The translations under genes were made by a program, and so were the position numbers. The notes beneath the pieces were generated by a model that was not told the origin of the DNA, ran no database searches, and saw nothing but the letters and a program-made list of their open reading frames with translations. From the sequence record ON529855.1: 64,000 nucleotides of DNA. The stretch is one strand, 5' to 3'. The stretch's first letter is position 1, and each line of letters opens with the position of its first letter. This document shows positions 7,401 through 53,546 of the stretch, one piece after another.

Positions 7401-8522
7401 TCAGACGTCGGGCGGCATCAAAACGATGCCCGAAGGGACCGGCGAGAGGGGATTGAACCCCGCTTGAGACCATGCCCGATGCGGGATTTTGACGCCTTCC
7501 TCCTCCCGCGCGCGATCCAGCGCCTGGGTGAAGCGCGGCAGGGCCAGGCCGGTGCCGTAGGACCAGATGTGATCCCCGTGCCGTCGCAGGCCGTATGAGC
7601 CGATCTCAATGCCCGCCAACAGCAGGTCGCGGCCCTCGTCGGTCTTCTCCTGGGACAGGGCGGCCTTGGGCGCGCCAAGCCGCAGCGCCAGTTCATAGGC
7701 GTCAGCCAGCATCGCCTTCCAGCCCGTGTCGTCGGCGTAGGTGTTGTCGTAGAGTTCCACCTTCATGAAGGTCGGGAAATGCAGGTCGCCCTCGGCGTCG
7801 CCCAGGCGGAAACAGGGCGTGCAGGCGACCATGCGGCCGTGGCCGATGGCGCCGTCTTTGTCCAGATGAAGGAAGGATTGCTCAGACGATCCGACCAGGT
7901 AGCCCAAGCCGTCCACGCGCGCCGCGAACGCCGGGTTGGGGCAGGTGATGTCGATGGTGTCCTTGGACACCGCCCAAGGCGTCTCGACGTAGCGGTAGCC
8001 TTCCGCCTCGTAGAAGGCCACGGCGGCGCCCAGCAGGGCGTAGTCGATGCGCGGCATCGGGGGCAGGTCCTTGTGGACCGGCGCGACCGGGTAGCGCGCT
8101 TTCATCTGGCTGATCGCGTCGCGAATCGCGCCCACCCAACGCGACTGCTTGGGCGATCCCGTCTCGGCGTGGTCGATCGCCTCCAGCGGCTGGTCGTTCA
8201 GATGCGCCAGAGGCACGCTCAGGCCGTAGCGGGTATGAATTTGCGTGCGGACATGGTCCGCCCACTCCACGTCGCTCGCCCGATAGAAACGCCAGTCGGG
8301 CGGCGGCGGCGGGGTCGGCCGACGGGCTTGTTCGGCCGCGATCAGGACGCGCAGCCGCGCCTCCAGGGACGGCCCGGAAGACGACCCGAACCACGGCGAA
8401 GGCCGCGCCATCATGTCTCCCAGCGACACCGTGGGGTGGTACTCCGAGGTGAAGACCGCCTCCTCGAACCGCTCCAGGTCCAGATCGATCACATAGGTCG
8501 AGCGCCAGTCAGCGTCGTCCAT
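7401..8522 (-). CDS. class II aminoacyl-tRNA synthetase (SerRS-like) catalytic-core protein with unknown N-terminal domain
   Basis: FYEAEGYRYVETP (motif 1-like), ACTPCFR...FMKVEL (motif 2-like), GTGLALPR (motif 3-like); no tRNA-binding arm evident. Confidence 0.65.
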   Translation of the reverse strand: MDDADWRSTYVIDLDLERFEEAVFTSEYHPTVSLGDMMARPSPWFGSSSGPSLEARLRVLIAAEQARRPTPPPPPDWRFYRASDVEWADHVRTQIHTRYGLSVPLAHLNDQPLEAIDHAETGSPKQSRWVGAIRDAISQMKARYPVAPVHKDLPPMPRIDYALLGAAVAFYEAEGYRYVETPWAVSKDTIDITCPNPAFAARVDGLGYLVGSSEQSFLHLDKDGAIGHGRMVACTPCFRLGDAEGDLHFPTFMKVELYDNTYADDTGWKAMLADAYELALRLGAPKAALSQEKTDEGRDLLLAGIEIGSYGLRRHGDHIWSYGTGLALPRFTQALDRAREEEGVKIPHRAWSQAGFNPLSPVPSGIVLMPPDV

Positions 8523-51070: not shown

Positions 51071-51189
51071 TGGAGCGGGTGGACAGACTCGAACTGCCGC
51101 CTCCGGGTTAGCCACCCGGCGCTCCTGGGTCCACGCGAACCCCCGACGATGATTCGCGTGATCATCGTCGGCCCTAGAGCCTCACCCGC
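51071..51189 (-). ncRNA. 119-nt tRNA-like RNA with two hairpins inserted in the D loop
   Basis: GCGGGTG/CACCCGC acceptor, U73, CCA; GCTC/GAGC D stem enclosing 52 nt; CCGGG-TGGCTAA-CCCGG; GGCAG-TTCGAGT-CTGTC. Confidence 0.8.
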
Positions 51190-51426
51190 ATAAGTTGGCA
51201 GGAGTTTTCAGATATGGCGAACCATACCCAGGGCGACCCTCCTGCCAGGAACCCCCGTCTCGGTTTCTTTCACTGGCCCCGACACGAGCACCTGTCAAAG
51301 CCTATCTAGCCGCCAGGCTTGCGGAACGTCTCGGGCGATTAGGCGCCTCGGGATGAACAGCGTTGCGGACGGCGTAGCATCGGCTTGCCGTGATTACTGA
51401 CAGACGGCGCCGGTGGTGTCAACAAT

Positions 51427-52058: not shown

Positions 52059-52149
52059 TGGCGGACGGCACGCGATTCGAACGCGTGGGACCCAGGGGGT
52101 CCGCCTGCCTTCCAAGCAGGTGCCTTAAGCCGGGCTCAGCCAGCCGTCC
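52059..52149 (-). tRNA. tRNA-Ser(GGA)
   Basis: CCTGC-TTGGAAG-GCAGG; long variable arm; CCA. Confidence 0.95.
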
Positions 52150-52154
52150 GGTGT

Positions 52155-52372
52155 TGGTGGAGGCGAGGGGATTCGAACCCCCGTAGACGCCGAACCCTCG
52201 CATTACCAAGGGCCGATCTCAGGTTTAGAACGCGTGTGCCGCCCTGACCATCTTCCGCAGGCCAGGGGGTCTATCGTAACGACCCCGTCGATCGGTTGCC
52301 TCTGCGTCCCGGATTTACCCGGACCGTTGCTCTGTTCCACGGTGCTCATGCCGAAACCCGAGCGACGCCCCC
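52155..52372 (-). ncRNA. 218-nt tRNA-like RNA with Ala-type acceptor (G3.U70, A73, CCA)
   Basis: 5' GGGGGCG pairs with 3' CGCCTCC-ACCA; T arm GGGGG-TTCGAAT-CCCCT; about 140 extra nt in several hairpins; flanked by short spacers like its tRNA neighbours. Confidence 0.75.
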
Positions 52373-52381
52373 GTGAAGAAA

Positions 52382-52469
52382 TGGAGGATGGTGTGGGATT
52401 CGAACCCACGGAACCTTGCGGTCCACCGGTTTTCGAAACCGGCGCGATCGGCCTCTCCGCCAACCATCC
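52382..52469 (-). tRNA. tRNA-Ser(CGA)
   Basis: CCGGT-TTCGAAA-ACCGG; long variable arm; U73; CCA. Confidence 0.95.
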
Positions 52470-52698: not shown

Positions 52699-52769
52699 TG
52701 GTGGAGACAGTGGGGCTCGAACCCACCAAGGCTTCCTTGCAAAGGATGCCTGCGCCCTGCGCTGTCCCC
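52699..52769 (-). tRNA. tRNA-Ala(TGC), shortened D arm
   Basis: GGGGACA/TGTCTCC with G3.U70; loop TTTGCAA; A73; CCA. Confidence 0.85.
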
Positions 52770-53164: not shown

Positions 53165-53169
53165 ATTTT

Positions 53170-53251
53170 TGGAGAACCCTGGTGGAGTCGAACCACTTGC
53201 GCCTGGATTAAAAGCCCAATCCCGGCCACCCGGATTTAACGCTCAAGGTCC
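53170..53251 (-). tRNA. tRNA-Lys(TTT), atypical D region
   Basis: TTGGG-CTTTTAA-TCCAG; GGACCTT/AGGGTTC acceptor; CCA. Confidence 0.75.
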
Positions 53252-53264
53252 CCTAAAGTTATGT

Positions 53265-53355
53265 TGGTGAACGTGGTCGGACTCGCACCGACGATGAAGG
53301 TTGTAACCTAACGGGATTAAGAGCCCCGGCCTCTCGCTACTGAGGTGACACGTCC
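53265..53355 (-). tRNA. tRNA-Lys(CTT) with long variable arm
   Basis: CGGGG-CTCTTAA-TCCCG; variable hairpin AGGT-TACA-ACCT; T loop TGCGAGT; CCA. Confidence 0.85.
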
Positions 53356-53390
53356 AAAACTGTTGTTCTTCTCTCCTGAAGACTTGAAAA

Positions 53391-53461
53391 TGGAGCCGGC
53401 GGACGGTGTCGAACCGTCCCATGTCCACTACGAAAGGTCAGCCCTGCCACCAGGCGCCGGC
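53391..53461 (-). tRNA. tRNA-Thr(CGT), degenerate anticodon stem, mini D arm
   Basis: Perfect GCCGGCG/CGCCGGC acceptor (G1-C72, C2-G71); GACCT-TTCGTAG-TGGAC; next to Thr(GGT); CCA. Confidence 0.6.
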
Positions 53462-53467
53462 GTTGTT

Positions 53468-53538
53468 TGGTGCCAAGGGAGGGAGTCAAACCCTCGCTGA
53501 ACCCATACCAAGGGCTCGACCGATCACCCGGCCTTGGC
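53468..53538 (-). tRNA. tRNA-Thr(GGT), short D arm
   Basis: AGCCC-TTGGTAT-GGGTT; GCCAAGG/CCTTGGC acceptor; CCA. Confidence 0.8.
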
Positions 53539-53546
53539 GTTGATGT

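Follow-up and report, generated by a model that had tools for sequence, protein, structure and literature searches.

A giant tRNA-like RNA with an alanine acceptor in the tRNA array of Brevundimonas jumbo phage vB_BpoS-Domovoi

What kind of RNA is made from a 218-nucleotide (nt) gene that stands in a phage transfer RNA (tRNA) array, ends like a tRNA for alanine and has no anticodon loop? The question is raised by positions 52155-52372 (minus strand; 5′ end 52372, 3′ CCA 52155-52157) of a 64,000-nt stretch, here called the window, of Brevundimonas jumbo phage vB_BpoS-Domovoi (ON529855.1, 352.7 kb, Dolichocephalovirinae); window positions are record positions minus 248,000. A first-pass annotation of the window had picked out the element as a tRNA-like RNA with an alanine acceptor and had suggested, among other roles, a miniature rescue RNA akin to transfer-messenger RNA (tmRNA). 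Here we show that the gene is real and conserved and that its product is a structured, tRNA-flanked RNA. We regard the element as a stable RNA belonging to a family, the giant tRNA-like RNAs of jumbo and huge phage tRNA arrays, that is apparently undescribed: the literature that we tried on tmRNA-like and tRNA-like RNAs of jumbo and huge phages yielded no description of it, and a large catalogue of candidate viral structured RNAs could include it unnamed (PMC10690425).

The element occupies the place of an ordinary array member. It lies on the minus strand within the series tRNA-Ser(GCU), tRNA-Ser(UGA), tRNA-Ser(GGA), the 218-nt element, tRNA-Ser(CGA), a 62-amino-acid open reading frame, tRNA-Ala(UGC), tRNA-His and three tRNA-Leu genes. 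Spacers of 9 nt to tRNA-Ser(CGA) (52382-52469) and 5 nt to tRNA-Ser(GGA) (52059-52149), which the first-pass annotation had likened to those of a normal tRNA, were confirmed against the flanking tRNA-Ser calls. No annotation covers the element in Domovoi or its six relatives (Kabachok, Papperlapapp, Marchewka, Bambus, Gurke and Kikimora), and its identity across these seven Brevundimonas jumbo phages is 95.0-100%, while the 1.4-kb array around it is just 85.8-86.8% identical in Gurke and Kikimora. The fold energy of the single 218-nt sequence is unremarkable (z = -1.26), so the case for the element depends on comparative evidence.

Exact-pattern scans, probed with the 3′ end and with the best-conserved motif of the interior, CCCUUGGUAAUGC of P5, retrieved diverged homologues. 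They come from uncultivated phage contigs of 136-607 kb and lie inside tRNA arrays: L011 (3022-3240, minus strand, 543-kb contig), L036 (9668-9882, minus, 607 kb), L037 (9569-9757, minus, 277 kb), L039 (1474-1665, minus, 435 kb), L040 (121-299, plus, 455 kb, also binned as a gammaproteobacterial metagenome-assembled genome, L176), L119 (448-635, plus, a metagenome contig), L208 (about 7551-7791, minus, 136 kb) and L055, a fragment on a truncated contig. All family members directly adjoin tRNA genes, with a gap of 0-20 nt. Long forms of 212-219 nt (the Domovoi group, L011 and L036) can be told from short forms of 179-192 nt, and CCA is encoded only in the former; L037, L039, L119 and L040 have ACAA, ACUA or ACAG instead.

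A covariance model, R1, was trained on four short forms only, using their RNAalifold consensus structure, in which helix P2 was not included. R1 matched the window element with the exact ends 52155-52372 (68 bits, E 7.6e-15), and this recovery by a model built without it, together with the identity among the seven phages, bears out the first-pass identification and makes the similarity more than chance. The other long forms were also matched end to end (L011, 96.9 bits; L036, 81.4 bits), and L208 scored 40.5 bits (E 4e-8). No R1 match was obtained in the examined loci of Caulobacter phages CcrColossus (L003) and Magneto (L009), and blastn in other Dolichocephalovirinae returned only the T arm and acceptor of their tmRNAs and no homologue of the element.

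The upper body is shown by comparison of these sequences to have the predicted form of a tRNA or tmRNA, with acceptor stem, T arm, true D arm and alanine identity set. All of its parts are on the minus strand. The 5′ acceptor strand GGGGGCG (52366-52372) pairs with CGCCUCC (52159-52165), which is followed by the discriminator A73 (52158) and the encoded CCA; with the canonical T arm, every part of the alanine acceptor end that had been read from the window is thus present. All members form seven of seven acceptor pairs. The pairs G1-C72, G2-C71 and G3.U70 are invariant in 11 of 11 Ala-type sequences, in which A73 is likewise fixed, and pairs 4-6 covary; retention of the G3.U70 wobble through such divergence implies selection. 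The D arm (52344-52363) has the stem GCUC/GAGC and a 12-nt loop, GGGUUUCGGCAU, with the tmRNA-like motif GGnUUCGRC, and a single A follows it at the position of tRNA nucleotide 26. Its stem pairs in 100% of alignment cells, covaries (GCUC/GAGC, GCCU/AGGC, GCCA/UGGC; two of four pairs changed on both sides) and is independently predicted by RNAalifold on the short forms. The first-pass annotation had left a choice at this point between the D stem and a long-range helix, CUCGGGUUU/AAACCUGAG; the D stem is real, and the helix is contradicted by Gurke and Kikimora, where its 3′ strand reads AAACCGAAG with two uncompensated changes. The T arm, GGGGG-UUCGAAU-CCCCU (52166-52182), is likewise paired in 100% of cells, with two covarying pairs and a loop, GGUUCGAAUCC, that is invariant in Ala-type members.

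Below this body the resemblance to tRNA ends. At the anticodon-arm position stands H2 (52324-52342), a 4-bp helix, CCGU/ACGG, closing an 11-nt purine-rich loop, GGAACAGAGCA. H2 has 4-5 base pairs (bp) in the family and covaries (CCGU/ACGG, CCGG/CCGG, GUCGC/GCGAU, ACGC/GCGU). Its loop ranges from 9 to 13 nt, which disposes of an anticodon loop, as had been noted for the Domovoi sequence; a decoding tRNA is rejected, the canonical 5-bp stem and 7-nt anticodon loop being absent and the loop of H2 variable in sequence and paired elsewhere. H3 (52309-52322; CCGG-GUAAAU-CCGG) adjoins it, a hairpin of 3-5 bp in the family with the hexaloop GUAAAA, GUAAAU or GUAACA and a covarying stem (CCGG, UCGG/CCGG, CCAG/CUGG, UCGGA/UCCGA, UCAGG/CCUGA; 96% of cells paired).

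The remainder of the molecule is enclosed by P2, whose 5′ strand GACGC (52304-52308) pairs with GCGUC (52186-52190), 3 nt ahead of the T arm, closing the accessory domain at the variable-arm position. P2 pairs in each lineage with differing sequence (GACGC/GCGUC, GGCGC/GCGUC, GACGCAU/AUGCGGUC, CAGC/GCUG, CGAGCUG/CAGCGCG, AAGGUUG/CAGCUUU, GCGCA/UGCGC), and an A-U pair has become G-U within the Domovoi group. A linker of 7-9 nt leads from its 5′ strand to P4, CCGAUC (52290-52295) paired with GAUCGG (52213-52218), which has 5-7 bp in the family and is the best-covarying helix (CCGAUC/GAUCGG, UGGAUU/AGUCCA, UGGAA/UUUCA, UGGUGUG/CACACCA, GGUUGA/UCAACC): native pairing averages 6.2 against 3.3 in cross-lineage combinations, and six of seven pairs have changed on both sides. 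The interior of P4 (52219-52289) is variable, 71 nt here and 31-39 nt in the short forms, and in the window it includes a hairpin, CCCCCUGGCC...GGUCAGGG (52239-52269), whose end pair is C-G, U-A or U-G within the Domovoi group and broken in Gurke. The P5 hairpin, CCC-UUGGUAAUGCGA-GGG (52195-52212), shows the highest conservation of any internal element; no member departs from GGUAAUGC (family form CCC..G-GUAAUG-C..GGG), and inside the Domovoi group the inner positions of the hairpin covary, one pair being U-A, U-G or C-G. Among the hairpins first proposed from the single sequence, CCCUUG/CGAGGG, which is P5, and CUGGCC/GGUCAG gain support from compensatory changes inside the Domovoi group; GGGGUC/GACCCC is absent from the best fold and is not conserved in the homologues.

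The H2 loop appears to be tied to this domain by a pseudoknot, which we regard as well supported but not proven by the comparison. Loop bases 1-5, GGAAC (52334-52338), would pair with GUUCU (52227-52231), which precedes a conserved AAACC. The register is fixed: in the interior of P4, on its 3′ side, the stretch directly preceding a conserved RAACC lies opposite the start of the H2 loop. Reading the lineage sequences gives GGAAC/GUUCU in Domovoi and L011, AGAACAG/CUGUUCU in L036, AAAGAC/GUCUUU in L037 and L039, AAAAC/GUUUU in L119, AGGAA/UUCCU in L040 and AAACG/CGUUU in L208, that is, compensatory changes at four of five register positions. The cross-lineage control discriminates weakly (mean 5.5 native versus 4.8 cross) because purine-rich loops pair promiscuously with pyrimidine-rich strands. 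An alternative pairing of the H3 loop or the linker with the U-rich 5′ side of the P4 interior was rejected, its cross-lineage control equalling the native value. In the short forms L037, L039, L119 and L040, the 3′ strand of the pseudoknot shares 2-5 nt with the 3′ strand of an inner hairpin, P4.1, so that the two pairings are mutually exclusive; between L037 and L119 a G-C pair has become A-U with complementarity kept in both pairings, which may constitute a conformational switch.

Taken over the whole molecule, covariation backs eight helices, the closing helix P2, and the pseudoknot to the loop of the would-be anticodon arm, so that the check across related phages which the first-pass annotation had proposed supports helices through the entire insert. 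Manual segmentation, RNAalifold on the short forms and a model-based alignment, A5, agree in structure. The pairings of P2 and the pseudoknot were verified both manually and by script. In A5, which was fitted to the R1 structure, pairing holds in 92.7% of cells, compared with 78.2% in shuffles, both sides have changed in 21 of 45 pairs, and none of 500 shuffles reaches the observed values, a count that is not to be read as a probability; sliding the partners by 1-3 columns lowers pairing to 34-55%. These comparisons show a predicted architecture in which the anticodon arm is replaced by H2, its loop tied by the pseudoknot to an accessory domain of 100-140 nt (H3, then P2 enclosing P4 and P5). 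The accessory domain departs from the body at the variable-arm position, in the same direction as the connector helix from the tRNA-like domain (TLD) of tmRNA; a passage of PMC3985003, citing Bessho 2007, describes that helix as leaving the TLD in the variable-arm direction. The H2 loop and H3 may resemble elements of the RNase P S-domain, and the P5 loop the elbow-docking motifs of T-loops and T-boxes, a speculation to which Rfam lends no support.

Standard tools do not place this RNA. ARAGORN called neither tRNA nor tmRNA on 52155-52372, even with introns allowed or with a relaxed score. At gathering thresholds Rfam gave no match on the element, the tRNA model RF00005 included, and with E values up to 10 the sole match was to tmRNA (RF00023, clan CL00001) at 32.1 bits, below the cut-off of 47 and with a wrong, interior 5′ end; no aptamer, ribozyme or group I intron family matched in that mode. 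The homologues scored 20.9-31.9 bits against the Rfam tmRNA model, whose gathering score is 47. Standard annotation (ARAGORN, tRNAscan, Rfam thresholds) therefore misses RNA genes in huge-phage tRNA arrays.

Is the element then a diverged tmRNA? The likeness seen at first has a sound basis in the tRNA-like domain and in the ends: the 3′ 28 nt are identical to those of the bona fide tmRNAs L010 and L014, the long-form 5′ sequence GGGGGCGU...GGnUUCGRC resembles theirs, and tmRNA is the nearest Rfam family. As a matter of membership the proposal fails on the score of 32.1 bits versus 47, the real D stem and the want of a conserved frame. The acceptor with G1-G2-G3.U70, the A73-CCA end, the T arm and the lack of an anticodon are shared with tmRNA (SsrA), whereas the 4-bp D stem and the anticodon-stem-like H2 would stand where SmpB sits on tmRNA. 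The layout ahead of the connector is unlike that of tmRNA, in which a D-loop analogue lacking a D stem leads straight into the long connector helix P2 and the pseudoknot PK1: the element has the covarying 4-bp D stem, H2, H3 and then a short P2 of 4-9 bp; in place of a pseudoknot ring and tag, the element has its pseudoknotted domain of 100-140 nt, and its one pseudoknot, from the H2 loop to the P4 interior, differs in topology.

A complete tmRNA is in any case encoded elsewhere in the same genome. A two-piece (permuted) tmRNA lies outside the window at about 224,036-224,291 of ON529855.1 (L224:1490-1745, plus strand of the locus). It matches the Rfam tmRNA_permuted model at 60.2 bits (cut-off 47), encodes the tag ASNDNFAAGERVLLAA*, of the classic alphaproteobacterial type with the ...LLAA ending, and adjoins tRNA-Cys and two tRNA-Met genes, as in phiCbK-like phages. 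With the permuted tmRNA of Caulobacter phage Magneto as query, blastn found the same unannotated 52-nt match in seven of seven Brevundimonas jumbo phages. ARAGORN run on the Domovoi locus did not call this tmRNA, which explains why the paper describing the Brevundimonas jumbo phages reported none (PMC10070969). The 218-nt element is thus no substitute for a missing tmRNA, a real one being present in Domovoi and all six relatives, and alongside the full tmRNA and tRNA-Ala(UGC) it is an additional alanine-type acceptor. In Magneto itself (JX100812.1), the permuted tmRNA, which is unannotated and has the tag VADNDNDVVAFASAREAIAA, adjoins an unannotated GOLLD RNA (L009:473-959, minus strand; RF02032, 169 bits, cut-off 150) with an embedded tRNA-Lys(CUU).

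We tentatively favour, at somewhat less than even confidence, the reading that the element is a non-decoding mimic of alanyl-tRNA and tmRNA, akin to the tmRNAs without coding sequence, which engages the translation or ribosome-rescue apparatus during infection. AlaRS, the alanyl-tRNA synthetase, requires only a G3.U70 acceptor helix, and acceptors with G3.U70 are known in tRNA-Ala and tmRNA. Judged by its sequence, the 218-nt RNA is probably processed as a tRNA and alanylated. It would be co-transcribed with the neighbouring tRNAs and released by RNase P and the tRNA 3′-end machinery, with CCA added in those relatives that do not encode it; host AlaRS would load it with alanine, since G3.U70 is all that the enzyme needs; and the charged RNA, unable to read codons, could engage AlaRS, EF-Tu, the ribosomal A site and possibly SmpB, modulating translation or rescue with no protein tagging. 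Tag-less relatives of tmRNA occur in jakobid mitochondria, in some plastids and, as "TLD only", in mycobacteriophage DS6A, and a DS6A-like molecule inhibits tmRNA in E. coli whether chargeable or not, perhaps by titrating SmpB (PMC4131195, PMC11915505). The DS6A type shares with our element its phage origin and the lack of a tag (PMC4131195, PMC11915505); the DS6A forms of about 65 nt, a likeness drawn from their description, have little beyond the TLD, to which the element adds a conserved domain of 100-140 nt.

Several observations weigh against this reading. The L208 member has the family architecture on the acceptor GCCCCUG/CAGGGGC with G73, a non-alanine identity, and the proposal of an alanine identity shared with tmRNA, which holds in 11 of 11 Ala-type sequences, is consequently not universal across the wider family. 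Domovoi already possesses a complete tmRNA and tRNA-Ala(UGC), which leaves no obvious call for a third alanine acceptor. A tblastn search for SmpB (with the smpB sequence taken from NC_000913.3 by coordinates) detected no such gene in any phage of Brevundimonas or Caulobacter, and since the D stem and H2 occupy the place of SmpB on tmRNA (as deduced from PMC3985003), canonical SmpB binding by the element seems doubtful. Public RNA libraries (RNA-virome, wastewater) hold low-depth contigs of relatives only, which also span a neighbouring coding region; they may be DNA carry-over and show neither transcription nor ends.

The non-alanine member is more at home with another explanation, the main rival, possible although rather unlikely in our estimate, namely that the element is a tRNA-scaffolded effector RNA. 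The accessory domain would do the work, whether by binding a protein, by acting as a decoy against defence systems or by sensing, with the tRNA body serving for processing by RNase P and at the 3′ end, for stability and perhaps for docking to proteins that bind tRNA, and with charging incidental. L208 retains the whole domain on its non-alanine acceptor, no internal element of the family varies less than the P5 loop GGUAAUGC, the exclusivity of P4.1 and the pseudoknot in the short forms hints at a conformational switch, and other ornate phage RNAs are tied to tRNAs, such as the GOLLD of Magneto with its tRNA-Lys. This explanation meets its main difficulty in the acceptor stem, where G1, G2, G3.U70 and A73 are strict in 11 of 11 Ala-type sequences while the stem drifts, a pattern hard to explain without charging or recognition by AlaRS; moreover, the genes beside the element are tRNAs, with none for a partner protein recurring there, and no Rfam aptamer or ribozyme matches.

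A bolder version of a ribosomal role, which we consider improbable, would make the family a third class of alanine-accepting RNA, self-contained and SmpB-independent, acting on the ribosome with the rod of D stem, H2 and pseudoknot in the role of SmpB or the anticodon arm and the P2/P4/P5 domain, joined at the attachment site of the tmRNA connector helix, following onto the small subunit. If it were true, huge phages could add alanine to nascent chains on stalled ribosomes, or release those chains, with no tag; alternatively, the RNA could shut off rescue by the host and leave the tmRNA of the phage to operate.

Less probable again is a role off the ribosome, for want of an anticodon, as alanine donor to an aminoacyl-tRNA-dependent transferase resembling Fem/MurM, an aminoacyl-lipid synthase or a peptide ligase. 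Specialised non-proteinogenic tRNA isoacceptors exist in bacteria, and retention of the identity set with loss of decoding would fit such a donor; no candidate transferase was identified, however, L208 is not alanine-type, and a simple donor would have no need of so large a conserved domain.

That the element is a miniature one-piece tagging tmRNA we consider very unlikely. Translation would resume after the pseudoknot and run for 7-8 codons (KPEIGPW in Domovoi) to the invariant UAA of the P5 loop, or from the GCA after H3 (AEATDRRGRYDRPPGLRKMVRAAHAF) to the UAA at GUUCUAAACC. A pseudoknot directly upstream of a short frame whose stop lies in a hairpin loop is indeed reminiscent of tmRNA, and the base after AACC varies freely (U, G, C or A), as a synonymous third position would. 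The distance from the pseudoknot to the P5 UAA is in frame in six lineages, at 21 nt in the Domovoi group, L011, L036, L119 and L040 and 24 nt in L208, but 22 nt and out of frame in L037, L039 and L055. Tags as short as two amino acids occur in real tmRNAs (PMC11915505); when all three frames were examined across nine lineages, however, none was conserved, which agrees with the initial impression of no evident tag. The long frame from GCA ends differently by lineage (AAHAF* in Domovoi, ...SSPW* in L011, AAS* in L036, AA* in L037) and meets a premature UAG in L119. AGCCCUUGGUAA is invariant even at synonymous sites, and three phages of the Domovoi group have CGG (R) in place of UGG (W) as the putative last codon, the pairing partner having changed with it, which points to a constraint on RNA structure. 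Together with the Rfam score of 32.1 against 47, the negative ARAGORN result even when relaxed, the D stem and H2 at the place of SmpB and the genuine tmRNA in the same phage, these observations weaken the original suggestion of a mini-tmRNA for rescue.

A degenerate gene, either a tRNA-Ala or tmRNA pseudogene with an insertion or a tRNA with a large spliced intron, would suit the failure of ARAGORN and the Rfam tRNA model to make a call and the first impression of a tRNA with about 140 extra nt, but it is scarcely credible given that purifying selection acts more strongly on the interior than on the whole array, with compensatory changes throughout the insert, conservation and covariation that exclude a pseudogene, while for an intron no removal of a segment yields a 5-bp stem with a 7-nt anticodon loop, there is no complement to an anticodon stem near the T arm, ARAGORN makes no intron call and no group I or ribozyme family matches.

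Among other known RNAs, the element resembles in its body tRNA-Ala and the class II tRNAs, with which it shares acceptor, D arm, T arm, alanine identity elements and array spacing and, in the case of class II, an extra arm placed after the anticodon-arm position and before the T arm; it differs from them in having no 7-nt anticodon loop and a "variable region" that consists of two arms totalling 110-150 nt. GOLLD, ROOL and YrlA are likewise structured non-coding RNAs of phages or bacteria with physical or structural ties to tRNAs, but none has an Rfam match to the element (RF02553 included), and GOLLD and ROOL exceed 400 nt. YrlA contains a tRNA-like module, according to a passage of PMC4201824; its ends form a Ro-binding stem, whereas those of the element form an acceptor stem with a free ACCA. 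The position of the element in a phage tRNA cluster has a parallel in T4. There, "species 1" and "species 2" (rnaD and rnaC) are small stable RNAs of unknown function, encoded in the tRNA cluster and matured in the manner of tRNAs, and the likeness to our element lies in that description.

A conserved, folded and non-decoding RNA with alanine identity would be a new viral route into the tRNA and tmRNA machinery. Members of the family turn up independently in a cultivated group of jumbo phages and in several huge phages that are uncultivated, in each case within the tRNA array. Since both Domovoi and its host, Brevundimonas pondensis, are cultured, the proposal is open to direct test.

The arrays of Domovoi and its relatives contain other tRNA-like features. 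Upstream of the array, on the minus strand at window positions 51071-51256, lies an unannotated oversized tRNA-like gene. It combines the acceptor GCGGGUG/CACCCGC and the T arm GGCAG-UUCGAGU-CUGUC with a hairpin insertion of 40 nt; when introns are allowed, ARAGORN reports it as tRNA-Pro(UGG) interrupted by an intron of 92 nt, and its 123-nt core folds with z = -2.8. A 380-nt gap between tRNA-Leu and tRNA-Pro (53165-53546, minus strand) holds a degenerate tRNA-Lys(CUU) (53265-53355) and tRNA-Thr(CGU) (53391-53461), found at a relaxed ARAGORN score only; the corresponding place in Gurke and Kikimora is taken by an annotated tRNA-Lys and a fourth tRNA-Leu. The tRNA-Ala(UGC) of the window (52699-52769, minus strand) is just 71 nt long, with a shortened D arm and the anticodon at position 29, and falls below the Rfam tRNA threshold in the Domovoi group; the version in Gurke and Kikimora has 76 nt. 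The non-alanine family member L208 is bordered on either side (L208:7540-7810) by the direct repeat ATCCGGTGTAGA, perhaps a signal for processing or a remnant of an insertion event. In the huge-phage arrays, sub-threshold matches at L037:3479-3604, L039:483-621, L119:1117-1240 and L119:2710-2862, with scores among them of 31.7 bits for YrlA, 34-35 bits for ar35 and 22 bits for R1, suggest further candidate non-coding RNAs that are as yet unannotated.

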